Source of the DNA: Basidiobolus meristosporus CBS 931.73
Lineage: Eukaryota; Fungi; Basidiobolomycota
Length of the DNA stretch: 44,413 nt
Assembly (NCBI GenBank): GCA_002104905.1
Contig: MCFE01000695.1
Location: 1 to 44,413 of the forward strand
Reading direction: 5' to 3'
In this document: one piece after another, positions 25,741 to 44,413 of the stretch
Layout of the letters: the number at the start of each line of letters is the position of its first letter
How positions within the stretch are numbered: position 1 is the stretch's first letter
Position numbers and translations under genes: made by a program
The notes under the pieces: model-generated
What the model saw: the letters and a program-made list of their open reading frames with translations, nothing else
The model's database searches: none
Told to the model about the DNA's origin: nothing

Positions 25741-26755
25741 GAGGGAAAGTCACCAAGTTGGTGAAATCTTTATTTGAGTCAAGAGCTAATCTAAGTACAA
25801 ATAAAGAAGTCAATTAAGAGGTCTCGAACCTCTCTAGTAAGTAATCTAACTTATGTTTTGTTTCATTTCTAATGTTTGTTTCAATGAAGTAAAGTTCATC
25901 AGGGGTAAATATAAGATTCAAGGGTTTTGGGGGAAGTACACATTGTAGATGTTTCTGATCAATAATATCCAAGACTGGAACCCAGCCTGGGATTAGGTGT
26001 AGTAGGAAAGGTGTGTGGACTTGTAAGTAGCTCTGCCACATAGATCTTAGATGGCCCTGCACCAGTAGTCTTGGTTTCTCAGCTTTTTGAAGTTTTGAAG
26101 CAAGCTCTGTTACTACAGCAGAGCCAACCAGGGTGTGACAGCAAGAAGATCTCAGAGAGGAGTTAGATTCAAGCCATTGTTTGATGGAGGGGTTATGTGA
26201 TTTCTGATGTTTGACTAGGTAGGAAGCATGAAAATAGACCATTTGGGTTATGTATGGGTAGAACCCAAAGGCTCCATTAGTTGCATGGATATAGGGAGAT
26301 ACTGGAAGATAAGGTACCAAGGATCTGATACACTGATGGAGAAATTTATCCAGGTGGTGATGTTCTCTGGAGGTTAGGGGTATAATGTGGAGACCAAATT
26401 CAAGTACTGGCAGTACATACTGCTTTAGAAGTATAGGGATCTTTTGAATTGGAGTTTCTGGAGTGACTACTACTAGAAGCTTTTTAAGGGCCTGTTGGGC
26501 AAGACAGATCCTATTATTCAGGTGGAGCATTGAGTCAATCCCATGTTGACAAAATGGCAGACCTAGATATATGGCTGTTTGTTGTGGCAGAATGCTAGTG
26601 TTCTGTATAGTTGTAGTGCACCCAATTGTGACTGTCTTGGAAATTGAGAGTGAGAGGTTGTTGGCAGCCTAGTACTTATCAATGATGGCAGTGTCTGTTA
26701 TGGGATTAGGAGTAGCAATCTTGATAACATCCACATAGAGAGTTAGTAGTAGATA
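25741..26755 (-). mobile_element. LINE element A: older 5'-truncated relative of the APE-RT LINE (RT C-terminal part + 3' UTR)
   Basis: Frame reads LTLYVDVIKI...IYLGLPF...HLNNRICLAQQAL...KQYVLPVLEFGL, homologous to the ORF2 C-terminus of the other copies. One in-frame stop near 26670. It has the shared 3' terminal signal. Confidence 0.88.
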
Positions 26756-26764
26756 GGGTTAGGG
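26756..26764 (+). repeat. GGGTTAGGG telomere-like target/TSD copy 2
   Basis: Lies exactly between the truncated 5' end of element A and the 3' end of LINE copy 1. Confidence 0.85.
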
Positions 26765-26822
26765 GGGGAGACAGTCATCAACAGGTGAAATCTTTATTTC
26801 AGCGGAAACAAAGAAGCCAGCA

Positions 26823-29189
26823 CTACTGTTGTAGCTTTGATACAAGAGTGTGTAGCTGAGGGGAATTTGTAGGTAAGTTAATAAGAAGTGATGATAGTTC
26901 TTCAGTGCTCAAGACACTGTTCAGTGGGAAGGGGGGTAGCAAGAGAGGTAAGAATGACTTGTGAACAACATTAATGAGGGGAATATGATAAGGATTGATA
27001 TTCATCATAAAGGGAGTGTGCTGCTGCAGATATTGCTGCCAAAGGTTGGTCAAGTACTTCAGGTAGGCCAGCTTGGGTTTTTCTGACTGCAGAATGTAGT
27101 GAGCAAACTTCTTGACTTCAGGATCTCCAAGTATAGTTCTCCAGCAGGAGCCAGGTGTAGTGCGGTGTGTTCTCTTCCAGGCCTTAATCAGTGGGTTGTT
27201 GCAGTGGTGAAGTCTGAGATATAATCTGGTTCTAAGGTAGAGAAGTCTGATCTTATAGGGCATAAACCCAAAAGCACCAAGAATAGCATGTCTGTAGGGG
27301 CATTCAGGCAAATGAGGCACCAAGGAGGTAATGCACCATACTGCAAACTTGTCAAGCTTAGTGCAGTCTCTAGAAGTAAGAGAGAGAAGTGGTAAGCCAT
27401 ATTCCAGGACAGGGAAGACAAACTGCTTGAGTAGAAGGAGGCAGCTGGGAGCTGAAGTTGTAGGAGGAGTAACAGCCAGTAGCTTGTGGAGTGCCTGTCT
27501 TGCCAGGATAATTCTCTTCTTCAGGTGTGCTCCAGAGTCTAGTCCAGTAGGAAGGAAAGGAAAGCCAAGATATGTAGCAGAAACCTGAGCAGGTAGAGTG
27601 GAGTTCTCCAAGTTGATGGGAGAGCCCAAAGGTGCTGTCTTTGCAATGGAAAGCTGGAGATTATTCTTCTGCAGATACTGGTGGATGGTCTGGGAGTCTT
27701 GTTGCACATTGGAGGAGGATATTCTGATGTCATCAGCAAAGAGAGTAACCAGGCAGTCAGCTGACAGTCTTGGGAAATCATTCAGGAGGATGGCAAACAG
27801 TATAGGACCAAGCACAGAGCCTTGAACCACTCCATTAGGAACTGAGAACACAGCTGATTGCTCACTTGGGTGCAGAATTCTTGCTTGTGGATCCAGAAAC
27901 AGAGACCTGACAAGGAGGGTGAGAGAGGTACTGGAGAAGCATTGCAACTTGGACCAAAGCAGATTTCTGTCAACTGAATCAAAGGCCGTGGTAATATTAA
28001 ACAGAACAGAGGGATACTTGCACTGGAGAGAGTGATCTTGGCTAAGTATGACTGCATATTCCAAGGAGAGGCCAGGAACAAAACCAAACTGTGCAGGATG
28101 AAACTTGAGGGAGTCAGAGTAGAGCTCCTGAGCAAGCAGAAGCTCAAACACCTTTCTGCAGGTGGGCAGCAGAGATATTGGCCTGTAGGAGCTAGGATCC
28201 AGGTGCTTTCCTTTACCCTTGTACAGTGGCAGAACATTTGCAAAAGACCATTCCTCAGGAGTAAAAAGCTGGGCTGAGCATTGCTGAAACAGTGGAAGCA
28301 GAAGTGCAGACATGGCCTTGGTACTAGTCTTCAGAAGCTCATAGGAGATTGTGTCCACACCTGGAGCAGTAGAGTTGGGAAGCCTCTTGAGCACATTATG
28401 GATTCTCCCTTGATCAAGTGCAAGTGGGATGGGCAGAGTCTTGAAGCCAGGATGAAAGCCAGGAGTTGAGTACTGCTTTGTAGAGAAGAAGACGTTAGCC
28501 AGCTGTTCTGTTGAAGGTAACTTCCTGGAAGAGGGCCTCATTGCCCTGTAGAGTCTTGATACTGTTCTTGTTATAGAGTTGGAAGATTGCAGAGGCAAAG
28601 AACTCATAATATGATCCCAGAGCTGAGTATGCAGAGTGTGGTGAATTGCCTTGGAGTGGTGTATTGCTGTCAGGAGGAGTTTCTCTGTTTTTGGGTTAGG
28701 GAAACTCAGGTAGCTTTGTTGCAGGGCTGAAACAATGGATTCCCATTTTCTTGAGGTAACAGCAGTAGTCTTGCATGGCAGTGAGAGGGAGGCAGACACC
28801 AGAATCAGATGCTTCACAAAGAGCCAGGCATAGTTGAGATCATCTGGCAGAGAAAGTAGCAAACTGGCAAGCTTCAAGTAGTTCCCAAAGTCTTTCTTCT
28901 GATTCTTGGTAGCTTTGTGGGTGAGCACAGTAAGTTTTGGCAGCTTCTTCTTCACAACTGGTTGCATAGAAAGGGACCAGGCTGGGTGGTCAGAGGCTCA
29001 CAAGGATCCTAGCTCAGCTCCAGAGAATTGCTTAACTTCATTCACAAAGTAGAGGGCAGCAGCAGAAGGACAGATCCAGTCAACACATCTTTTCTCAGAT
29101 TGAGCACCTAGTGCTAGCAGGTGGCTTTCTCTCAGGAAGTTCAGTAGGAATGTAGACCTTGGCTTCATTCTTGCAGTCAGAGTAGTCTA
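26823..29189 (-). pseudogene. ORF2 of LINE copy 1, downstream part (end of APE + reverse transcriptase), open frame
   Basis: VDWI, SDH, APGVDTISYELL, YRPISLL, QFGF, AFDSVDR, GVVQGSVLGPILF, LFADD. The N-terminal APE part lies at 33882-34283. Confidence 0.93.
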
Positions 29190-29194
29190 GTTCT

Positions 29195-29543
29195 TGTTGT
29201 AAGAGTCTTGGAGATATTGGAAGTGATTGGGAGAACAAGTAGATTATGTGGTTTTCACTTAATGATTTATTGATTGTAGAAGTAGTATTTATACTTTTAC
29301 CTAGTCTTGGCATAACAAACACGTAGAATAGGTTAAGGAAGGTCCCAAGAACATGTGTGCAAAGTTTGGGGCTGTTTGGACAACTTTGAGAATTTTCATG
29401 TTCTGGGTACCTGGTATTTTGGTGAAAATATTCTAAGTAAATCCCAACAAGGAATTTGGTCAGTATTCTCTAGGATTTGAAGGTAATGATCTAAGTGACT
29501 AAGTTAGGTGAATATTTAGGTGGAAATACAAATTTTTACAACA
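29195..29543 (-). repeat. Copia 3' LTR
   Basis: TGTTGTAA...TTACAACA ends, preceded on the - strand by the polypurine tract GAGTGGGAG (29544-29552). Confidence 0.97.
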
Positions 29544-29554
29544 CTCCCACTCAG

Positions 29555-32500
29555 CTAAATGTTCATACTGACTAGTCCTAATTTTGACCTAAGATATTCA
29601 AACTTGTCTCTAGCTAATGGTTTGGTAAATATGTCTGCAATCATTTCATCTGTAGGACAGTAAACTAAGCTAACTAAGTTATTCTCTATAGCTTCACGTA
29701 TGAAATGATGTCTAATATCTATGTGCTTGGTTCTAGCATGAAAAGTTGGATTTCTACCTAATTGTATACATCCTTGATTATCTTGAAATAAAGTAATAGG
29801 CGTTTTTTGACATAGGCCTAAATCTGTAAAGAGCTTTCTTAACCACATTGCTTCTTTTGTAGCTTCACAGGCTGCCATATACTCTGCCTCTGTAGTAGAA
29901 AGTGCTACGGTTGGTTGCTTTCTTGAATCCATGAAATTGCTCCTTTACAGTAAAGAAAGGTGTATCCTGTGGTGGATCTTCTGTCTTCTAAATTTCGTCC
30001 CCAAGCAGCATCAGAGTATCCCACAAGATCCTGTTCTGAATCCTTATAAGTGTATCTTAAGCAGATATCAGCAGTTCCTTTTAGGTATCTAAAAATCCGC
30101 TTAACTGCTGCAATATGATCAGATCCATAATTCTGATTATGTTGGCTGACAACTCCCACTGAATATGAGATATCTGGACGTGTTCCAAGCATGATATACA
30201 TCAGACTGCCGACCATAGATTGATAAGGAAAGTCAGGGCTTTCAGATGGCACCAAGCTCTCTTGATTTGGTTGAGTTTTGACCAAGTTAAGGTTTGTCTC
30301 CATTGGGGTAGCTGCCGGTTTACAGTCTTCCATTTTGTACTTCTTTAGTATATCTTGAATATACTTGGATTGGCTTAGGGTAATAGTCTGGGTACTTCTG
30401 TCTATGGAGAACTTAATCCCTAAGTAGTAACTGAGTTCTCCTAGATTGGACATCTTGAACTCCTTAGATAGGCTGGATTTAGTCTCTTCCAATGTTTCTA
30501 GGTTATTGGCGGCTATAATAAGATCATCCACATATAGAGCTAATAGAACTGGATTTGCTCTATCTGGCTTATAGTATATACTATAGTCAGCATTACTCCT
30601 TTTGAAACTCAAAGATTCCAAATAAGAATCTATCTTGCAATTCCAGGCTCTTGGTGATTGTTTGAGACCATATAGTGACTTTTTAAGCTTGCAGACCAAA
30701 TGGGGGTTATCTTGGTCAACAAACCCATCAGGCTGGTCCATATACACGTCCTCATCAAGTTCTCCATTCAAAAATGCAGTTTTTACATCCATTTGATGAA
30801 TAAAAAACTTATATTTGGCTGCAATAGCCAATATTAATCTGATGGAATTAAACTTGGCTACCGGTGCAAAGGTCTCAGTATAGTGCAAGTCCTTTTGTTT
30901 GAGAGTATCCTTTGGCTACAAGTCTTGCTTTGTATCTTTCAATTGTACCATCAGCCTTGTACTTTTGTCTTGAAGACCCATCTGCATCCAATTGATTTTC
31001 GGTTGATTGGTAATTTGACTAAGTCCCAAGTTTGATTTTCCATCAGGGCCTGATATTCCTCAGTCATTGCAGATCTCCAAAACTTTGTCTGAGGGCTATT
31101 TAGGGCCTCTTTTACAGTCTGGGGTTCATCAATATGGACTGAATAGGCATAGGCTAAGTTTGTACCCTCATTGATATAGTAATTTGGGCTATTTCTTGTC
31201 CGAATTGGATCTCCGGGCATTTGATACTGGAATGATCACTTCTGGGATATTCCTGGGCACTGATTCTGGCTGAACCACGGTTGTAGAGTCCTCTGGAGTG
31301 AAAAAATTTTCATTGTTTTGCTCTGATTCAATCCTGACAATTGGTGGACTTGAGATCAAATTTTCGTCATCATCTGATGTCATTTTTTGTGAAAATTTTG
31401 AATTTTCATCAAACAACACATCCCTGGACTTGATCAGCTTCTTTGCTTTGGTATTGTAGAGTCTGTATGCCTTACTCTCATTGCAGTAGCCCAAAAATAT
31501 GCATTTTACACTTTTTGGCTCAAATTTTGACTGATTTCCGGCCAGTTTTTTGGCATATGCTGTACACCCAAATATTCTTAGATGTTCTGCACTTGGTCTG
31601 TATCCATACCATGCTTCAAATGGAGTAGAATCACAAAGTATTCTGTTATAACTCCTATTTTTAAGATATACAGCAGTGGCAACTGATTCCGCCCAAAAAT
31701 CATAGGATAATTTTTGATCATGGATCATAGATCTTGCCATATCAATTATTGATCTGTTAGCTTGTTCTGCTACTCCATTTTGCTGTGGGGAGTATGGTAC
31801 AGTAGTCTCTTGCTTTATCCCATGAATTTTGCAGAAGTGGATGAAGAGTTTTGAGGTATATTCTCCACCATTGTCAGAGCGTATTTTCTTGATTTTTTCA
31901 CCAGTTTCTCTCTCCACCATGGCTTTAAACTCCCTGAACTTAGACAGAGCTTCTTCCTTTCTCTCCATGAAGTAGACCCATGTGTATCTTGTATAATCAT
32001 CAATAAAAGTGATTAAATACTTCATCCCGCCTAAGGATAAATTTTGCATAGGTCCACACAGATCTGAGTGAATTAGATCTAATTTTTTCTTAGTTTTGAT
32101 TAACCCAGAGCTCTTGAACGGTTGTCTGGCTTGTTTCCCATATATGCAGGCTTCACAGTGCTCCAAATTAGCTGGGGGATCAATTTTCACTCCAGAAATT
32201 AGCTGATCTTTGATCATTTTACGCAAATAATCAAAATTGATGTGTCCAAATCTCCTGTGCCAAAGCATTGGTGTTTCTTCATTTAAGTTACTTATATTGG
32301 CTTCCAGATATGATGGAATATAAGTCAACTTGTATAGATTCTGATCTCTGATGCCCAAAGCAATATGAGCACCATTTTGATCAGTGATCCTGCATCCAGA
32401 ATTGTCAAAACTGAAACTGAGTCCTTCTGCTGTGGCCTTGCTTACAGAGAGTAGGTTCTTGGCTATTTCTGGTACATAGAGTACTTCTTTAAAGGTCAGT

Positions 32501-33528
32501 GTATGGCTTCCTTCACTGCTTCTAAGGTTTACTTGGATAGTTCCTTCTCCCACTGCATCAAGTGTTCTATTGTCACCCATGAAAACCTTCTTAATTGGAA
32601 TTTCTTGATATTGGGTAAAAAGTTCTTTTTGGTGTGTAAAGTGTTGAGAAGCTCCAGAGTCAATATACCACGTCTGAGAATCCTTGTTTGTGGTCATATT
32701 TAGTGCAGATATGAATAGTCTATCTTCAGTTGTTGCAGCATTTCCATATTCAGGCTTCTTTTGCTGATAATCTCTCTTTTTGAGACACCGGTCTGATGTG
32801 TGTCCTTTCCTTTTGCAGTAGTTGCAAAATAGGTTGCTGTTGCCTTTGTAGGGTCTTGGGTACCTCCTTTGTTGGTTATCATTGCTTATTAAAGCATTTT
32901 CTTCTTCCTTCTTATTGGCGCTTGATTTTCTTAATTCTTCATCCAGGAGCCTTCCATATACGTAATTTAAGGTCAAATCTTCAGTTCTGGACTCTAGGGC
33001 TGATACAAGGCCCTGAAACTCGTCTGTCAGGCTATTCAGGATGGTAACTATCACATCCTCATCAGTAGTTGGTACGCCCACAGATTCCATCTCATCTACC
33101 AGCAGGGTAATTCTGTTAATTAGATTTTTCATTTCTTCTCCTGGCAGCATCTTTGTAGTAAAGAATTTTCTTCTCAGATACATTTTCTTGGCAGCTGAAC
33201 ATGACTGGTAGGTGTCTTCTAATGCCTTCCAGGCATTCTTTGCCGTTTTTGCTCTTGAGCATTGAATTAGCAATTTGTCCTTGACATTAAGGCAAATGCA
33301 GTTAAAGGCACTTTGTTCTTTCTTCTGGTACTTCAAGGCTTCCTCTCCCACGTTTTTAGGAGGGCATTCTTCTCCCATGACAATATCCCAAAGGCCTCTT
33401 TCTTGTAGCAGCATCTTCATCTTCACCTTCCACACTTGGTAGTTAGATCCATCCAACTTTTCAGCAGAGGGAAAAATTCCAGTAATAGCAGTAGTAGACA
33501 TTGCAGAGAGTGACAGCTTGGGGCTCAT
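29555..33528 (-). pseudogene. Copia gag-pol polyprotein with four single-base frameshifts
   Basis: KLDGSNYQVWK (gag), CNYCKRKGHTSDRC (zinc knuckle), WYIDSGASQH (protease), LWHRRFGH, HSDLCGP/SDNGGEY/QQNGVAE (integrase), QMDVKTAFLNG/LYVDDL (RT), SDAAW/TEAEY/ADIFTK (RNase H). Shifts near 31205, 30965, 30885 and 29930. Confidence 0.95.
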
Positions 33529-33532
33529 AACC
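33521..33532 (-). other. Primer-binding site GGTTATGAGCCC (initiator tRNA-Met anticodon-arm type)
   Basis: Immediately follows the CA end of the 5' LTR. Complementary to GGGCUCAUAACC of tRNAiMet, as in Ty5 and Drosophila copia. Confidence 0.88.
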
Positions 33533-33881
33533 TGTTGTAAGAGTCTTGGAGATATTGGAAGTGATTGGGAGAACAAGTAGATTATGTGGTTTTCACTTAA
33601 TGATTTATTGATTGTAGAAGTAGTATTTATACTTTTACCTAGTCTTGGCATAACAAACACGTAAAATAGGTTAAGGAAGGTCCCAAGAACATGTGTGCAA
33701 AGTTTGGGGCTGTTTGGACAACTTTGAGAATTTTCATGTTCTGGGTACCTGGTATTTTGGTGAAAATATTCTAAGTAAATCCCGACAAGGAATTTGGTCA
33801 GTATTCTCTAGGATTTGAAGGTAATGATCTAAGTGACTAAGTTAGGTGAATATTTAGGTGGAAATACAAATTTTTACAACA
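33533..33881 (-). repeat. Copia 5' LTR
   Basis: 349 bp, differing from the other LTR at two positions (33664 and 33784). Confidence 0.97.
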
Positions 33882-34393
33882 GTTCTCAGGATGGGGAATG
33901 TTGAGATCTCCAAGCAAGATAACAGGTGTTGATATAGATTGTTGGTATTGCTGAACCTTCTGGCATATAACTTGCACTTCCTGAAGGGCAAGACTTGGAG
34001 GCAGATAGCAGAGCACCAGACTGATAGTTGGCAACTGGAGAGCAGCACAGTAAGGGGAGTAAAGAGGAACACAGAGCTGAGGAGTATTGATGGTAGAAGA
34101 GATGAAGCAGATAGAGGAGGTATTCTTTGTTCTAGGAGTAGAAAAGCAATATAGATTAGTCAAAAGTATAGAGGGTAGCTGGACATCAATCAAGCACAGG
34201 AGGGAAAATCTTGAAAGAAGTCTCTCTAGAGTTGGTCTTGATGGCTGTATGCTGTTGCTGTTAAGCAACAGAACTTCAGGTAGTCAGACAGAGGTTGTAG
34301 CTTCTTCAGAGGCAGCATTGATAATGTGACCTGCAGAGTCCCAGAGCTCTTCAAATGGTGCATCACCTAAGTCAGCAAGGAGGGAAATGGCAT

Positions 34394-34402
34394 GGGTTAG
34401 GG
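34394..34402 (+). repeat. GGGTTAGGG telomere-like target/TSD copy 3
   Basis: At the truncated 5' junction of LINE copy 1, with 2-nt GG microhomology. Confidence 0.85.
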
Positions 34403-34512: not shown

Positions 34513-35042
34513 ACTGCTCCCAAACTCTTTAAATTCACTTTGGATTACTTTTCTCTCATTCTTGGTTCTGGTCCCTTAGGGTTACAAATCCTCCTCCTAA
34601 CCCTTATCACCCTAACCATAAATATTTTTACCCTACAATTGGCACATTGTGTGCCCATATAGTGGGCATGTCTGGGCCAATATTTGTCTCCCTATACTGT
34701 CTATATGCTCCGTATAATTCTTGATGAACATTTAATTGATAAACTGTTACTTTTAATGTATAACTAATAATTAATGGGAATCATCCCAAACTGGCCACAA
34801 TCCCATATTTTGATAAGCTTTGGGCACCATAAATTGCGCGTCCCTAATATGATAAAAAATTCATGGCCAATACAAATTTTCTGTAACCCAATTGCTTTTA
34901 CCCAATATAAAGTGTATCCCAAAGTTCAATATTTATTATGGCTATAATAGAAACTTTATTTGACACCATTGCAACTACTACTTGTGTTCTATGCGCACAT
35001 GTATCCTGCAGGAATTGTCAAACTTAACCACATGGTACAAAA

Positions 35043-35500
35043 GTGCTTTTATTGTTCATCATGATAGTTTTACATGAGTTCCTAATGCACTTTGAAAGTA
35101 CGCAGTAGCCATACCCCAACAGGTTTTAGGATGTCCACTTGCTTTGTCTACTTGTGTCTAGCGGGAGCTATCAATCATCAGCCACGCAATACTGAAATGC
35201 TTTTATTTTTCATCATGCTAGTTTTGTATGAATTCCTAATACACTTTCATAGTGCGCAGTAACCATACCCCAACAGGTTTTAAGGATACCCACTTGCTAC
35301 GTTTACTTGTGTCTAGCAGGAGTCAATAATCATCAGCTGCGTGGTAATAAAGTGCTTTTATTTTTCATCACAATAGTTTTGCATGAGTCCCTGACGCACT
35401 TTTATAGTGCGCAGTAACCATACCCCCAGAAAGTAGTGTAGATGCTTACTTTAAACGCTCACTTGTGTATTGTACGGACTATCAACAAACAGCCGTGTGG
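35043..35500. repeat. Tandem repeat, about 3 units of 154-155 bp
   Basis: Units start TGCTTTTATT at 35044, 35198 and 35353 and share GCAGTA(G/A)CCATACCCC and ACTTGTGT. Confidence 0.9.
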
Positions 35501-39347: not shown

Positions 39348-40132
39348 GAGGGAAAGTCACCAAGGTAGGTGAAATCTTTATTTGACTTTAGACAAGTCTA
39401 ACTACAAATAAAGAAGCCAGTTGGGAATAGAATATTCCCAAAGTAAACACTAAGTTGAATATGAATAAATCTAAGCTAAAGTTAAGGCAGTATCCCAGAG
39501 TACACTGGAGTTCAGGTTCATGGGGGAGTGGAGTAGATAAGCTTGAGAGATATGATAATCTTTGAGGAAGTGGGTAACAGCAGGTGAAGGGGAGTTTTTG
39601 ATAAGTGAAGTGAATCTTGAGAGCAGAGATTCCTCTAAGGAGAAGGTCTTGTAAACTGGAGAATCAGGAAACTCTTTGAAGGCATGGTCAGTAGGCTCCC
39701 AGTAAAGCTGGTCAGAGACATTTTGAGAGAACTCTTTAGCAATACTTTTGTCAAGTACTACCTCCAGAGTGTGATGGTTGATAAATCTCATGTTAACAAT
39801 CTTGGATAAGTTGTAACCTTGTTGCTTGAGATACATCCTATGCTCAGATATAGGAATAAACTCCACATTGGCAAAGTAGCAGACAGCCCAGTCAGTAGCA
39901 GGAGGCAAATTGGAAGTGGCAGGAAACTTTCTTTTAGTCTTGGGAGGAGCAGCAGGATGTCTTGAGGAAGCAGGAACAGACTTTTTGACAACTTCAGAGT
40001 AAGAAGAATGAGCAGGAGCAGATGATTCTTGGGGAGTCTTGTTGGCAGGAAGAGTTGGCTCAGGGACAATAGATTCTTGCAGATCAGAGAAGGCAGAAAA
40101 GAGCTTTTGAACTTGTTTCTTGAGTAGGGCAT
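39348..40132 (-). mobile_element. Element B: 5'-truncated ORF1-only LINE derivative with the family 3' end, flanked by TTAGGG (39342-39347 and 40133-40138)
   Basis: Open frame 40132-39471 is homologous to the ORF1 C-terminal half (NLPPATDWAVCYF..PIS..R..L....LSKIVN). It is followed directly by a ~125-nt 3' UTR ending like element A, with no ORF2. Confidence 0.85.
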
Positions 40133-40194
40133 TTAGGGGGAGACAGTCACCAACAGGTGAAATCTTTATTTCAGTTGAAACAAAGAAGCCAGTG

Positions 40195-42961
40195 CTACTG
40201 TTGTAGCTTTGATACAAGAGTGTGTAGCTGAGGGGAATTTGTAGGTAAGTTAATAAGAAGTGATGATAGTTCTTCAGTGCTCAAGACACTGTTCAGTGGG
40301 AAGGGGGGTAGCAAGAGAGGTAAGAATGACTTGTGAACAACATTAATGAGGGGAATGTGATAAGGATTGATATTCATCATAAAGGAAGTGTGCTGCTGCA
40401 GATATTGCTGCCAAAGGTCTGTCAAGTACTTCAGGTAGGCCAGCTTGGGTTTTCTGACTGCAGAATATAGTGAGCAAACTTCTTGACTTCAGGATCTCCA
40501 AGTATAGTTCTCCGGCAGGAGCCAGGTGTTGTGTGGTGTGTTCTCTTCCAGGCCTTAATCAGTGGGTTGTTGCAGTTGTGAAGTCTGAGGTATAATCTGG
40601 TTCTAAGGTAGAGAAGTCTGATCTTATAGGGCATAAACCCAAAAGCACCAAGAATAGCATGTCTGTAGGGGCATTCAGGCAAATGAGGCACCAGGGAGGT
40701 AATGCACCATACTGCAAACTTGTCAAGCTTAGTGCAGTCTCTAGAAGTAAGAGAGAGAAGTGGTAAGCCAAATTCCAGGACAGGGAAGACAAACTGCTTG
40801 AGTAGAAGAAGGCAGCTGGGAGCTGAAGTTGTAGGAGGAGTAACAGCCAGTAGCTTGTGGAGTGCTTGTCTTGCAAGGATAATTCTCTTCTTCAGGTGTG
40901 CTCCAGAGTCTAGTCCAGTAGGAAGGAAAGGAAAGCCAAGATATGTAGCAGAAACCTGAGCAGGTAGAGTGGAGTTCTCTAAGTTGATGGGAGAGCCCAA
41001 AGGTACTGTCTTTGCAATGGAAAGCTGGAGATTATTCTTCTGCAGATACTGGTGGATGGCCTGGGAGTCTTGTTGCACATTGGAGGAGGATATTCTGATG
41101 TCATCAGCAAAGAGAGTAACCAGGCAGTCAGCTGAGAGTCTTGGGAAATCATTCAGGAAGATGGCAAACAGTATAGGACCAGCACAGAGCCTTGAACCAC
41201 TCCATTAGGAACTGAGAACACAGCTGATTGCTCACTTGGGTGCAGAATTCTTGCTTGTGGATCCAGAAACAGAGACCTGACAAGGAGGGTGAGAGAGGTA
41301 CTGGAGAAGCATTGCAACTTAGACCAAAGCAGATTTCTGTCAACAGAATCAAAGGCCTTAGTAATATCAAACAGAACAGAGGGATACTTGCACTGGAGAG
41401 AGTGATCTTGGCTAAGTATGACTGCATATTCCAAGGAGAGGCCAGGAACAAAGCCAAACTGTGCAGGATGAAACTTGAGGGAGTCAGAGTAGAGCTCCTG
41501 AGCAAGCAGAAGCTCAAACACCTTTCTGCAGGTGGGCAGCAGAGATATTGGCCTGTAGGAGCTAGGATCCAGGTGCTTTCCTTTACCCTTGTACAGTGGC
41601 AGAACATTTGCAAAGGACCATTCCTCAGGAGTAGAAAGCTGGGCTGAGCATTGCTGAAACAGTGGAAGCAGAAGTGCAGACATGGCCTTGGTACTAGTCT
41701 TCAGAAGCTCATAAGAGATTGTGTCCACACCTGGAGCAGTAGAGTTGGGAAGCCTCTTGAGCACATTATGGATTCTCCTTTGATCAAGTGCAAGTGGGAT
41801 GGGCAGAGTCTTGAAGTCAGGATGAAAGCCAGGAGTTGAGTACTGCTTTGTAGAGAAGAAGATGTTAGCCAGCTGTTCTGTTGAAGGTAACTTCCTGGAA
41901 GAGGGCCTCATTGCCCTGTAGAGTCTTGATACTGTTCTTGTTATAGAGTTGGAAGATTGCAGAGGCAAGGAACTCATAATATGATCCCAGAGCTGAGTAT
42001 GCAGAGTGTGGTGAATTGCCTTGGAGTGGTGTATTGCTGTCAGGAGGAGTTTCTCTGTTTTTGGGTTAGGGAAACTCAGGTAGCTTTGTTGCAGGGCTGA
42101 AACAATGGATTCCCATTTTCTTGAGGTAACAGCAGTAGTCTTGCATGGCAGTGAGAGGGAGGCAGACACCAGAATCAGATGCTTCACAAAGAGCCAGGCA
42201 TAGTTGAGATCATCTGGCAGAGAAAGTAGCAAACTGGCAAGCTTCAAGTAGTTCCCAAAGTCTTTCTTCTGATTCTTGGTAGCTTTGTGGGTGAGCACAG
42301 TAAGTTTTGGCAGCTTCTTCTTCACAACTGGTTGCATAGAAAGGGACCAGGCTGGGTGGTCAGAGGCTCTCAAGGATCCTAGCTCAGCTCCAGAGAATTG
42401 CTTAACTTCATTCACAAAGTAGAGGGCAGCAGCAGAAGGGCAGATCCAGTCAACACATCTTTTCTCAGATTGAGCACCTAGTGCTAGCAGATGGCTTTCT
42501 CTCAGGAAGTTCAGTAGGAATGTAGACCTTGGCTTCATTCTTGCAGTCAGAGTAGTCTTGTTCTCAGGATGGGGAATGTTGAGATCTCCAAGCAAGATAA
42601 TAGGTGTTGATATAGATTGCTGGTATTGCTGAACTTTCTGGCATATAACTTGCACTTCCTGAAGGGCAAGACTTGGAGGCAGATAGCAGAGCACCAGACT
42701 GATAGTTGGCAACTGGAGAGCAGCACAGTAAGGGGAGTAAAGAGGAACACAGAGCTGAGGAGTATTGATGGTAGAAGAGATGAAGCAGATAGAGGAGGTA
42801 TTCTTTGTTCTAGGAGTAGAAAAGCAATATAGATTAGTCAAAAGTATAGAGGGTAGCTGGACATCAATCAAACACAGGAGGGAAAATCTTGAAAGAAGTC
42901 TCTCTAGAGTTGGTCTTGATGGCTGTATGCTGTTGCAGTTAAGCAACAGAACTTCAGGTAG
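40195..42961 (-). CDS. LINE ORF2: AP-like endonuclease + reverse transcriptase, about 920 codons, two 1-bp deletions relative to copy 1
   Basis: LLLNCNSI, CYLPP, LLGDLN, VDWI and SDH (APE), plus the RT motifs FDITKAFDSVDR, GVVQGSVL and LFADD. Deletions near 41180 and 40450. No RNase H seen. Confidence 0.93.
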
Positions 42962-44278
42962 TCAGGCAGAGGTTGTAGCTTCTTCAGAGGCAGCATTGAC
43001 AATGTGACCTGCAGAGTCCCAGAGCTCTTCAAATGGTGCATCACTTAAGTCAGCAAGGAGGGAAATGGCATGGTTCTTGAGGAAGTATGCCACATCATAG
43101 GAGGGGGCTTGTCTCTTGATGGCAGCAAAGAAAGACAGAATGGCAACATGGGCTGGAGGCTTGTTGAACAGTAGAGAGTCAGAGGATTCAGATTCTTCAG
43201 GCACTATCTTGAAGTCAGTTTTCAGCCAGTTAAGGTTCTTCTCCACAAAGGCAACAAATGGGTCAGCAATGTTTTGGTCTAGGATAACCTCCAGAATCTT
43301 CCCTTTTCTCCAGGCCAGGTTGACAATTCTTGAGAGCTGAATATTGCATGCCTTGAGTGCTTTCCTGATGTTGGAAATGGGAGTCCAGGGAACTTGCTTC
43401 AAGTACACCACAGTCCAGGTAGAAGCTGGTGGTAGGTTTGCTGGGGGCTTGTAAGTCCTTCTGTGTGGCAATGGAGCTGCAGTAGTCAGATTGGAGTCCA
43501 CATTCTCAGTAGAGGGTTTTCTTGATGTGTCTTGCTGAATGGTACTGGAGCTGGATGTGCTGATAATTCTTGCTAGAACCTTGCCTGCATAAGTCTGAGG
43601 TATAGCTGAGGTGACTGTAGAGGTGGTGGCAGCTGGTGCAGGTGGAGAGGCAGAAACTGAAGCAGGAACTGAGGTCACCTGGGAGAAGGCAGTAGAAGCA
43701 GGTTTTCTGGGAGGAACAGAGTTCACTATCCAGTTGTTCTGTAAAACACTGGAGTAGCTTTTCTGTGGAACAGGATCTTGCTCTTGAACAGGAACAGAAG
43801 CAGGAGGCTGGGGCTGAGCAGTAGTGGTAAGGCAGTGGCACTCCAAGGAAGCTTTTTGCAAGGCATCTCTGGCAGTTTTCAGGGCAGTATTGGCTTCATT
43901 CTTGAGCTTCTTGCATTGGGCATCCAGTCTCTTGTTTTCAATAGCCAGGGCAGTATTGGCAGCCTCTAAATCAGCAATTCTCTTCTCAATTGCAAGGAAT
44001 CTCTGAAGAAATGCATCAGTAGAAGTGCTGGCATCTGGGAGAGCAGTGGCAGGAATAGAGTCCATTGACAGTGGGCTTCTTGGAGGCAAGGAAAGTGGAC
44101 TGGCAGATTCAGGCACAAAAGGAGATATCCTGGCAGGAGGAGAAGGAGTATCCAAGGCAGTAACAGAGGCAATTCTTGTTGGTGAAGCAGCAGCAGGGGA
44201 GGCAAGCCTGTTCAGAAACTGGGCAGGAGAGAGTGCTTGAGGAGAGGGAGTCTTCAGCTTGCCAAGCATGTCTTCCAT
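42962..44278 (-). CDS. LINE ORF1 (gag-like): S/P-rich N-terminus, coiled coil, conserved C-terminal domain, no CCHC knuckle seen
   Basis: 438-aa open frame directly upstream of ORF2. Heptad region LAIEKRIADLEAANTALAIENKRLDAQCKKLK. The C-terminal domain is shared with element B. Confidence 0.9.
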   Translation of the reverse strand: MEDMLGKLKTPSPQALSPAQFLNRLASPAAASPTRIASVTALDTPSPPARISPFVPESASPLSLPPRSPLSMDSIPATALPDASTSTDAFLQRFLAIEKRIADLEAANTALAIENKRLDAQCKKLKNEANTALKTARDALQKASLECHCLTTTAQPQPPASVPVQEQDPVPQKSYSSVLQNNWIVNSVPPRKPASTAFSQVTSVPASVSASPPAPAATTSTVTSAIPQTYAGKVLARIISTSSSSTIQQDTSRKPSTENVDSNLTTAAPLPHRRTYKPPANLPPASTWTVVYLKQVPWTPISNIRKALKACNIQLSRIVNLAWRKGKILEVILDQNIADPFVAFVEKNLNWLKTDFKIVPEESESSDSLLFNKPPAHVAILSFFAAIKRQAPSYDVAYFLKNHAISLLADLSDAPFEELWDSAGHIVNAASEEATTSA

Positions 44279-44413
44279 CAGAGTGATACCAATATTCCTG
44301 GTGCATTTGCAGAGAAAAGTAAGCTTCCTGAGTCTGCCAGCTCTTCCATTCCTTCTGATAGTTCCTTTGTTTCCACAGTTGGGGCAAGAAATCTTCTTGA
44401 CAGACTTGTCAAA

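Follow-up and report, generated by a model that had tools for sequence, protein, structure and literature searches.

Two Copies of a LINE-Like Element in the Window

The window, i.e., the whole stretch of 44,413 nucleotides analysed here (contig MCFE01000695.1 of Basidiobolus meristosporus CBS 931.73), harbors two copies of one retroelement, both on the minus strand. In copy 2, ORF1 (42965..44413) is still open at the window end, with a candidate ATG at 44278, and encodes a gag-like protein that combines a coiled coil with a conserved C-terminal domain, as deduced from its translation and from six homologues (38–60% identity). The last 8–17 residues of ORF1 are variable in the C-terminal alignment, rich in Ser/Thr/Ala/Glu, and end in Ser-Ala. 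ORF1 is terminated by a TGA (42962..42964), the proposed readthrough site, followed by CTA (42959..42961), the Leu codon that opens ORF2. The N-terminal part of ORF2 (42242..42961) was assigned to an endonuclease (APE-fold) domain using Pfam, AlphaFold, and Foldseek, and the remainder (40198..42241) to a reverse transcriptase (RT) followed by a C-terminal region, based on RVT_1, alignment with copy 1, and tblastn. The same alignment revealed two 1-bp deletions interrupting ORF2 of copy 2, near 41181 and 40453, and self-blast placed the 3' end of the element at 40136.

Re-reading of the ORF1-stop-ORF2 junction confirmed every sequence statement of the original prediction. The minus strand of copy 2 reads ACC TCT GCC TGA CTA CCT GAA GTT CTG TTG CTT AAC TGC AAC AGC, so that the in-frame peptide across the junction is ...EEATTSA*LPEVLLLNCNS, and the first Met of ORF2 is found at about codon 143, beyond GDLN (codons 125–128). 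A hairpin (42930..42949) begins 12 nt past the stop and consists of a 7-bp stem, CTGTTGC (42949-42943) and GCAACAG (42936-42930), with the 6-nt loop TTAACT.

Copy 1 lacks its 5' part, with the truncation at 34395, and is interrupted by an inserted LTR element (29195-33881). Its junction (34252..34395) comprises the 3' end of ORF1 (34395-34287), the TGA (34286-34284), and the CTA (34283-34281), i.e., the predicted TGA-CTA at 34286-34281, followed by the predicted 8-bp stem CTGTTGCT-TAAC-AGCAACAG at 34271-34252. Beyond the insertion, ORF2 resumes (26764..29194) with an intact 714-codon stretch and a TAG at 26825-26823. Both copies are dead, and protein searches were done with uninterrupted pieces, i.e., with the halves of copy 1 ORF2 unjoined, the frameshifts of copy 2 uncorrected, and no consensus. 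Since the two copies are about 98% identical, agreement between them alone is uninformative, and the weight of the analysis has to come from diverged relatives. Runs of the (TTAGGG)2 type are present at the element ends, which suggests telomere-repeat targeting.

Endonuclease Fold Directly Downstream of the Stop

Sequence comparison of the endonuclease region gave a weak Pfam match (Exo_endo_phos_2) and, for a profile search against the PDB, marginal matches only (E = 0.27), so that the fold had to come from a predicted model. The first 240 residues of ORF2 were modelled as an APE endonuclease by AlphaFold (pLDDT 87.4, pTM 0.84). The top Foldseek match of this model was the TRAS1 endonuclease (1WDU, E = 2e-10), and the folds of TRAS1, L1-EN, and APE1 all matched at a probability of 1.00. 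The RT domain was detected directly (RVT_1, E = 1e-22), with L1 ORF2p as best sequence match among solved structures (E = 1e-15). As judged from the model, the element is an APE-type non-LTR retrotransposon (LINE) with a predicted N-terminal APE-like endonuclease fold followed by the RT.

In the model, beta strand 1 corresponds to residues 3–8 past the stop, and the catalytic Asn8 of this strand, GDLN, and SDH are invariant. There is in-frame selection on the ORF2 N-terminus, and the predicted fold indicates that the region directly past the stop is translated in the frame of ORF1. Leu1 is also invariant; as it is placed outside strand 1 and beside the variable residues 2–6, its conservation points to a constraint on CU at the nucleotide level.

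A start codon for this region could not be traced through the family. The first Met of ORF2 was found 58–143 codons in for seven of the nine lineages compared (see below), and in L004, L005, and L013 there is neither an AUG nor a near-cognate codon from the stop to Asn8. An AUG near the stop, which would have spoken against the original prediction, was identified in two of nine lineages, at different codons: two codons past the stop in L002 and five codons past it in L001, a dead copy whose ORF2 stops at codon 255. Thus, no AUG is conserved in the family, in presence or in position.

Conservation of the Stop and Its Context

For comparison, we used the element of the window together with eight diverged relatives, giving nine lineages with 11 sequences. 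Searches of JGI metagenome contigs with profiles of the APE and ORF1 domains, and of viral contigs, revealed no additional relatives. Amino-acid identity of ORF2 among the lineages ranged from 32 to 76%, and 4-fold degenerate sites were 28–48% identical between lineages versus 29% expected at random. Neutral sites are thus saturated, and the lineages can be treated as close to independent.

All nine lineages (11/11 sequences) have a TGA at the end of ORF1, followed with zero spacer by a Leu codon CTN and by ORF2 in frame, and none carries a sense codon at the position of the stop. Conservation in more diverged members, proposed as a check of the original prediction, is therefore found for stop, frame, and layout. 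The predicted UGA-CUA context held for its first five bases, TGACT (alignment columns 1–5, with C at +4 and U at +5), which are invariant in the family. The base at +6 is A in five lineages, T in two, and C in two, so that conservation covers UGA-CU and not the full UGA-CUA. CTA as first codon is nevertheless overrepresented, occurring in 5/9 lineages versus 15% expected for Leu codons (P = 0.006). The choice of stop differs between the two ORFs, as ORF2 is terminated by TAG (4) or TAA (1) and by TGA in 0/5 cases versus 9/9 for ORF1 (Fisher P = 5e-4). Since both flanks are coding, the in-frame layout of ORF1 and ORF2 is partly inherited.

Intact ORF2s of 923–960 codons were identified in L002, L007 (together with near-identical contigs from five samples), L012, and L013, which indicates that these lineages replicated with the stop in place. 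ORF1 comprises 491–517 aa in L003, L004, L007, and L012. In relatives, it starts about 60 codons upstream of the ATG at 44278 (B. ranarum contig L006), so that the length of a fusion protein, originally predicted as ~1360 aa, has to be corrected to ~1,420 aa.

A sliding same-codon profile over the nine lineages revealed no family-wide excess of synonymous conservation just 3' of the stop. It displayed a modest peak about 45–65 codons upstream of the stop, within ORF1; as this peak falls on a conserved peptide with amino acids encoded by two codons each, it was not counted as an RNA element. DNA contigs of run X1 aligned over 42300-43600 were free of variants and joints at the stop; they probably derive from the sample used for the assembly of the window and thus are not independent evidence.

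Hairpin Downstream of the Stop

The hairpin was compared with 2000 synonymous recodings of the same peptide, generated with the codon usage of the family. It was more stable than expected in copy 2 (P = 0.011 for MFE and 0.018 for stem length) and in copy 1 (P = 0.0045), and throughout the subclade consisting of the window element, L002, L007/L010, and L012, for which P values for MFE ranged from <0.0005 to 0.011. RNAalifold recovered the same 7 pairs for this subclade, and the pair of columns 18/33 switches between G-C, A-U, and G-U, with a covariation score exceeding 500/500 shuffles. The predicted hairpin thus proved to be real, in excess of coding chance, and, as judged from recodings and covariation, is under selection in this subclade. 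It is weak in L001 and missing from L003, L004, L005, and L013, for which folding of 60 nt past the stop revealed no convincing alternative structure; L003, L004, and L013 have small hairpins further downstream (about +40 to +56), which were unaligned and had weak z-scores. Being kept in one subclade only, the hairpin cannot be a general requirement. The family and its outgroups form a natural series, in which CUA occurs without hairpin (L013), CUC is followed by a strong hairpin of 10 bp (L007), and the outgroups have UAAUG.

Comparison with Known Readthrough Systems and LINEs

UGA followed by CU suffices for efficient readthrough in Ustilago maydis and HeLa cells, with further stimulation by an A directly after the CU (PMC4207609). 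Among viruses, the type II readthrough context is UGA-CUA, frequently accompanied by a 3' stem beyond a spacer of 7–12 nt (PMC3159437). The Basidiobolus LINEs resemble known cases of this kind (U. maydis Tpi1, Art1, and Rpe1; human LDHB and MDH1; Sindbis) in having UGA, CU that is mostly CUA, and a selected in-frame extension, and one subclade shares with alphaviruses a 3' stem at a spacing of 9–12 nt (PMC3159437). Unlike in these cases, which have short targeting tails or viral replicases as extensions, the extension is a complete retrotransposon enzyme ORF of 923–960 codons, and the base following CU is variable. The hairpin is compact and local, with 7–10 bp and a 6-nt loop, and thus differs from the long-range stem of alphaviruses. 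G at +7, which is favoured in mammals, is absent from the family.

With respect to gene layout, there is a close likeness to the gammaretrovirus MuLV and to Tj1, an LTR retrotransposon of Schizosaccharomyces japonicus (PMC5911963), in which structural and enzymatic ORFs lie in one frame with a single stop between them. Start codons are lacking from their downstream ORFs, and a minority fusion sets the stoichiometry, as we propose for the Basidiobolus LINE. MuLV differs in using UAG and a pseudoknot 8 nt downstream. Moreover, MuLV and Tj1 are retroviral or LTR elements whose fusion is cut by a protease, whereas the Basidiobolus element is a non-LTR LINE without protease, so that its fusion would have to work uncut.

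As SART1 and TRAS1, the telomere-repeat-specific elements of Bombyx mori, the element is an APE-type LINE, and the TRAS1 endonuclease is its best structural match; this kinship is read from likeness rather than from a phylogeny with reference elements, at 13–17% identity to solved endonucleases. In SART1, ORF2 is in another frame, begins with AUG, and is made by coupling through a UAAUG stop-start overlap, whereas the Basidiobolus family is in frame. The same type of UAAUG overlap is found in L014 and L015, the nearest outgroups among LINEs, and the ancestor therefore probably used coupling. With human and mouse L1 the family shares a bicistronic RNA, AUG-independent ORF2 translation as an option, and the RT, which matches L1 ORF2p best. 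L1 ORF2 is translated by unconventional termination-reinitiation or, in mouse, from an IRES. L1 differs in a 63-nt spacer with in-frame stops, an AUG for ORF2, and ORF2 translation that depends neither on the frame nor on which stop is used (PMC5972666). TRE3 of Dictyostelium was considered as a precedent for an in-frame stop and rejected because TRE5-A and TRE3-A require a -1 frameshift (PMC5911963). In the literature searched, we found no description of stop-codon readthrough in a non-LTR element, nor of an ORF1-ORF2 fusion as the active form of a LINE. In some Arabidopsis LINEs (ATLN-L), an in-frame amber codon has reportedly been proposed.

Proposed Mechanism and Alternative Explanations

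Programmed readthrough yielding an ORF1-ORF2 fusion is probably the best explanation of these sequence data, and most likely the ORF2 enzyme is made as a rare fusion across a leaky UGA-CU. A single mRNA would hold ORF1 and ORF2 in one frame with the UGA as sole separator. The majority of ribosomes would stop there and free ORF1p, and in a small fraction the UGA would be decoded by a near-cognate tRNA, because termination at UGA before CU(A) is inefficient. The hairpin 9–12 nt downstream probably increases this fraction in one subclade. Ribosomes reading through would produce an ORF1p-ORF2p fusion of ~1,420 aa, with the variable Ser/Thr/Ala-rich tail of ORF1 as linker, and a high ratio of ORF1p to ORF2p would result, comparable to gag and gag-pol in gammaretroviruses. 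The sequences themselves show the layout, its conservation, the in-frame selection on the ORF2 N-terminus, and the excess stability and covariation of the hairpin, whereas ribosomal readthrough, its rate, and the fusion as the active form are inferred. A search of sequencing runs revealed no RNA library with the element. Somewhat more tentatively, and by a narrow balance, we favor the wider reading that this LINE family makes its endonuclease-RT only as an uncleaved fusion via UGA-CU readthrough, with ancestors that used UAAUG coupling.

The main competitor, which we regard as rather unlikely, is termination-reinitiation free of a start codon, in which some of the 40S or 80S particles would remain on the RNA after the UGA and start again on the following codon or close to it. 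ORF1p and ORF2p would then be separate products, as proposed for human L1 and, from an AUG, for SART1. Coupling or reinitiation is the route of characterised LINEs, and human L1 ORF2 can begin without AUG after termination of ORF1, a LINE precedent for codon-independent reinitiation (PMC5972666). Also the SART1-type UAAUG overlap of the outgroups L014 and L015 and the AUGs two and five codons past the stop in L002 and L001 would suit such a route, and since SART1 coupling also requires a downstream structure, the hairpin is not specific to readthrough. Yet reinitiation needs neither UGA as the stop, nor CU, nor ORF2 in frame, and all three occur in 9/9 saturated lineages. The AUGs near the stop are conserved neither in presence nor in position, that of L001 belonging to a dead copy, and in three lineages neither an AUG nor a near-cognate codon precedes the essential Asn8. 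The particular modes known from LINEs do not describe the family either: instead of the inter-ORF spacer and the independence from frame and stop identity of L1, there is zero spacer with frame and stop conserved, and a stop-start overlap of the SART1 type (UAAUG or AUGA) and a conserved AUG are both absent from the family.

That the stop is removed in another way, i.e., by selenocysteine at the UGA, RNA editing, or a small in-frame intron, appears highly improbable. Sec is encoded by UGA, the hairpin closely following this codon is reminiscent of Sec redefinition elements, and Sec is used by nine early-diverging fungal species, seven of them Harpellales; Basidiobolus is not mentioned among these nine in the part of that report consulted (PMC10386755). 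An Rfam scan of the full elements L002, L007, L012, and L013 (E up to 1) gave neither a SECIS nor any other match except for one chance lncRNA match, and a tRNA scan of the window revealed no tRNA. By inspection of the sequence, no plausible GT...AG intron covers the stop and spares the conserved LLNCNS strand, and DNA contigs showed no joints at the stop. Slighter still is the chance that the stop is a defect, with active masters having one continuous ORF, as known from some LINE clades, and the observed copies being dead relics with a nonsense mutation inherited in common. The dead state of both window copies would agree with this. The stop is found, however, at the same codon in nine synonymously saturated lineages with purifying selection on both ORFs, several lineages have fully open ORF1s (437–500 aa) and ORF2s (923–960 codons), no copy has a sense codon at the stop, and the X1 DNA contigs contain no variant.

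Implications for LINE Translation

How LINEs obtain the ORF2 protein from their bicistronic RNA is understood only in part, and each of the few cases characterised, i.e., L1 of human and mouse and SART1, takes an unconventional route of its own. If programmed readthrough holds for the Basidiobolus family, it would represent a fourth route to ORF2, a simple one with a known cis signal, and the family would be the first LINE with the gag-pol readthrough strategy of retroviruses. It would also provide a natural example of one recoding mechanism supplanting another, from UAAUG coupling to readthrough, and its comparative series is ready mutational material on the trade-off between context and structure in readthrough. 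An ORF1p-ORF2p fusion would then be capable of target-primed reverse transcription, which bears on the stoichiometry of ORF1p and ORF2p, and the physical joining of the RNA-binding protein to the enzyme would offer a built-in explanation of cis-preference.

Junction and state of the window copies

Both window copies of the APE-type LINE lie on the minus strand and comprise a gag-like gene (ORF1) and a gene for an APE-fold endonuclease and a reverse transcriptase (ORF2). The junction of copy 2 reads ...GAA GAA GCT ACA ACC TCT GCC TGA CTA CCT GAA GTT CTG TTG CTT AAC TGC AAC AGC..., with the ORF1 stop TGA at 42964-42962, the following codon CTA at 42961-42959, and a stem of CTGTTGC (42949-42943) and GCAACAG (42936-42930) around the loop TTAACT, all on the minus strand. 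Translation revealed ORF1 to be open on the same strand from 44413 (window end) to the stop, and a single frame across the junction (...EEATTSA*LPEVLLLNCNS...). The post-stop ORF remains open for 602 codons, to 41156, with a weak match to Exo_endo_phos_2 and a match to RVT_1, and its first Met lies at about codon 143, past the GDLN motif. Copy 1 displays a junction like that of copy 2 (34286-34281) and an 8-bp version of the stem (34271-34252), also on the minus strand. On re-reading, everything that the original prediction of UGA-CUA readthrough had stated about the sequence was correct (TGA, CTA, stem, frame, first Met, copy 1 junction), and DNA contigs covering the junction confirmed the window sequence there; among the sequencing runs searched, no RNA library contained the element. 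Since the copies share about 98% identity, their agreement alone carries no weight.

The structure of the copies was worked out by self-comparison of the window. Copy 1 is 5'-truncated at 34395, and its ORF2 is interrupted at 29195-33881 by a ~4.7-kb LTR retrotransposon, flanked by a 5-bp target duplication. The direct LTRs of this insert (29195-29543 and 33533-33881) are each about 349 bp long and were 99% identical across the 300 nt compared; this near identity suggests a recent insertion. The inserted element carries an 823-codon ORF (31189-33660, minus strand), and its translation revealed copia-like RT motifs at about 30000-31100 (ORF 29905-30888). The remainder of copy 1 extends from 29194 to 26764 on the minus strand, including an intact ORF2 stretch of 714 codons that terminates in TAG (26825-26823). 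Copy 2 lacks 1 bp relative to copy 1 at each of two places, near 41181 and 40453. The copies share one 3' terminus (at 40136 in copy 2 and 26764 in copy 1), neither has a poly(A) tail, and both are dead. Directly downstream of the copies (39486-40121 and 25871-26734) are fragments of other LINEs more distantly related to the element, namely an ORF1-like segment (31% identity to ORF1) and an ORF2 C-terminal segment (41% identity), an arrangement that would fit head-to-tail stacking. Upstream of copy 1, at 35036-35437, a unit of about 155 bp occurs three times in tandem, the repeats being 77-86% identical.

Relatives of the element

A protein search with ORF1 resulted in six homologues at 38-60% identity, one of them annotated as Basidiobolus ranarum, and a search with intact ORF2 added three further family members. 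In the ORF2 search, scores fell steeply after the family, from 784 to 145 bits, and below this fall were LINEs 31-34% identical across about half of the query. With DNA fetched for all relatives, nine lineages were distinguished: the window, L001, L002, L003, L004, L005, L007 (with L008-L011), L012, and L013. In the ORF2 tree, the window grouped with L001, adjoining L002 and L007, then L012; L003, L004, and L013 formed a second clade, and L005 stood alone. Pairwise ORF2 identity among lineages was 32-76%, while 4-fold degenerate sites were 28-48% identical between lineages compared with 29% expected from base composition, so that neutral sites appear essentially saturated. ORF2 was fully open in L002, L007, L012, and L013 (923-960 codons), and in L005 it was open for 870 codons or more. 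Contigs of five different samples carried the L007 form, each with the same 821-residue ORF2 product as called from the first AUG.

A Cys-rich N-terminal segment of ORF1 (CPNCGNKG...FLCKC) was seen upstream of the gene-caller Met in the window (44279-44413) and in the B. ranarum contig L006 (229-420). Its conservation in L006, whose ORF begins with a more upstream Met (MPPKPKQD...), indicates that the ORF1 protein probably has an N-terminal zinc-finger-like module; for the window ORF1, the start probably lies past the window end, about 60 codons before the 44278 ATG. Short (TTAGGG)2 or (CCCTAA)2 runs were detected at element ends in contigs of other samples (L007 5508, L009 4269, L012 4499, L006 147), which is consistent with telomere-repeat target sites.

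Conservation of stop codon and frame

In all nine lineages, TGA closes ORF1 and is followed immediately by a CTN Leu codon, with which ORF2 begins in the same frame and without a spacer. The LNC motif lies at a constant distance from the stop, with Asn as codon 8; Leu1 is invariant and residues 2-6 are variable. ORF2 itself terminates in TAG (window copy 1, L002, L007, L013) or TAA (L012) and never in TGA (9/9 vs. 0/5; Fisher P = 5e-4). Stop, CU, and frame are thus kept across near-saturated lineages, and of the UGA-CUA context first proposed the UGA-CU part stands, while the third base does not: the codon is CTA in the window, L002, L003, L005, and L013, CTT in L001 and L004, and CTC in L007 and L012. 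CTA accounts for 15% of the Leu codons across these ORFs, yet occupies the post-stop position in five of nine lineages (P = 0.006).

Start of ORF2

The first ORF2 Met lies 58-143 codons in for seven lineages. L002 has an ATG at codon 2 and L001 at codon 5, i.e., at different positions, and the ORF2 of L001 is broken at codon 255, which marks it by sequence as a dead copy. Neither an ATG nor a near-cognate codon occurs from the stop to Asn8 in L004, L005, and L013. When the first 240 ORF2 residues were modelled with AlphaFold on the nine-lineage alignment (mean pLDDT 87.4, pTM 0.84), the first beta strand fell at residues 3-8. In a Foldseek search, this model matched the TRAS1 endonuclease (1WDU, top), the L1 endonuclease, and APE1, with probability 1.00 in each case. 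Asn8, GDLN, and SDH are also invariant across the alignment. These features point to translation in this frame directly after the stop, and translation must, according to the model, be under way in ORF2 by about codon 3; a start at the internal Mets would remove the endonuclease core.

Hairpin downstream of the stop

A hairpin (7-10 bp stem, 6-nt loop) that starts 9-12 nt past the stop was present in the window, L002, L007/L010, and L012, being strongest in L002 and L007 (-20 to -23 kcal/mol in a 60-nt fold, z-scores -5.5 to -7). Tested against 2000 synonymous versions of the peptide's coding sequence drawn with family codon usage, the native fold was more stable in copy 2 (P = 0.011), copy 1 (P = 0.0045), L002 (P = 0.002), and L007, L010, and L012 (P < 0.0005 each). 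RNAalifold independently predicted the 7-bp core; 90% of cells in the 10-bp helix were paired, columns 18/33 pair as G-C, A-U, or G-U via synonymous changes in a Leu and an Asn codon, and the covariation score exceeded 500/500 shuffles and every slid register. L001 showed only a shifted 6-bp pairing by inspection and five pairs in the computed fold. Folding and the recoding test revealed no stem at this position in L003, L004, L005, and L013, and no family-wide excess of synonymous conservation was found downstream of the stop. The hairpin of the original prediction is therefore real in the window subclade, where stability and covariation mark it as a selected trait, but its absence elsewhere argues against a family-wide requirement. 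Both CTC lineages have strong hairpins and three of four hairpin-less lineages have CTA, which hints at compensation between codon and hairpin, though the sample is too small to claim it.

Probable readthrough and alternative explanations

In Ustilago maydis and HeLa cells, UGA followed by CU suffices for efficient readthrough, which is stimulated by A at the next position and lowered by replacement with TAA/TAG or by other downstream bases (Stiebler et al., PMC4207609). The type II viral context comprises UGA-CUA and UGA-CGG, and 3' stems with spacers of 7-12 nt raise readthrough 3- to 14-fold (Firth et al., PMC3159437). Readthrough predicts stop identity, the two next bases, and frame, exactly what is conserved, and also accounts for the missing ORF2 start codon. 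Codon-independent reinitiation after ORF1 termination, a possible alternative with a precedent in human L1, would likewise explain an ORF2 without a start codon, and the outgroups use coupling, but it explains none of the three conserved features. An inherited defect is poorly supported, the strongest counter-evidence being intact ORFs in saturated lineages; selenocysteine at the UGA and removal of the stop by splicing or editing are poorly supported as well.

According to reviews, L1 and SART1 use reinitiation or coupling (PMC5972666) and Dictyostelium TRE elements a -1 frameshift, gag stop suppression being mentioned in the latter review for the LTR element Tj1 only (PMC5911963); in the literature searched, we found no description of readthrough in any non-LTR element. 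In L014 and L015, the nearest LINEs fetched from outside the family, ORF1 ends and ORF2 starts within TAATG, the same overlap that was experimentally shown to give translational coupling in SART1 (PMC5972666). L014 (1-10393), on a 3-Mb JGI contig, consists of units of about 4.95 kb (ORF1 314-319 aa, ORF2 1130-1133 aa) that follow one another head to tail in a perfect tandem array, with no TTAGGG runs between them. The called ORF1 of L015 (1586-1647) ends in a TAA within a CAA-repeat (poly-Gln) stretch, and its frame runs on for another 55 nt to reach the TAATG overlap; the TAA probably arose from CAA by a nonsense mutation as the copy decayed.

As both outgroups have TAATG, the in-frame UGA-CU junction appears to be a derived trait of the Basidiobolus family. 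The B. ranarum label, the TRAS1-like endonuclease fold, and the end runs are consistent with telomere-repeat-targeting LINEs of a Basidiobolus. In this family, ORF2 is likely made by UGA readthrough, and the predicted fusion, initially put at ~1360 aa, would come to about 1,420 aa, given ORF1 lengths of 491-517 aa in the relatives.
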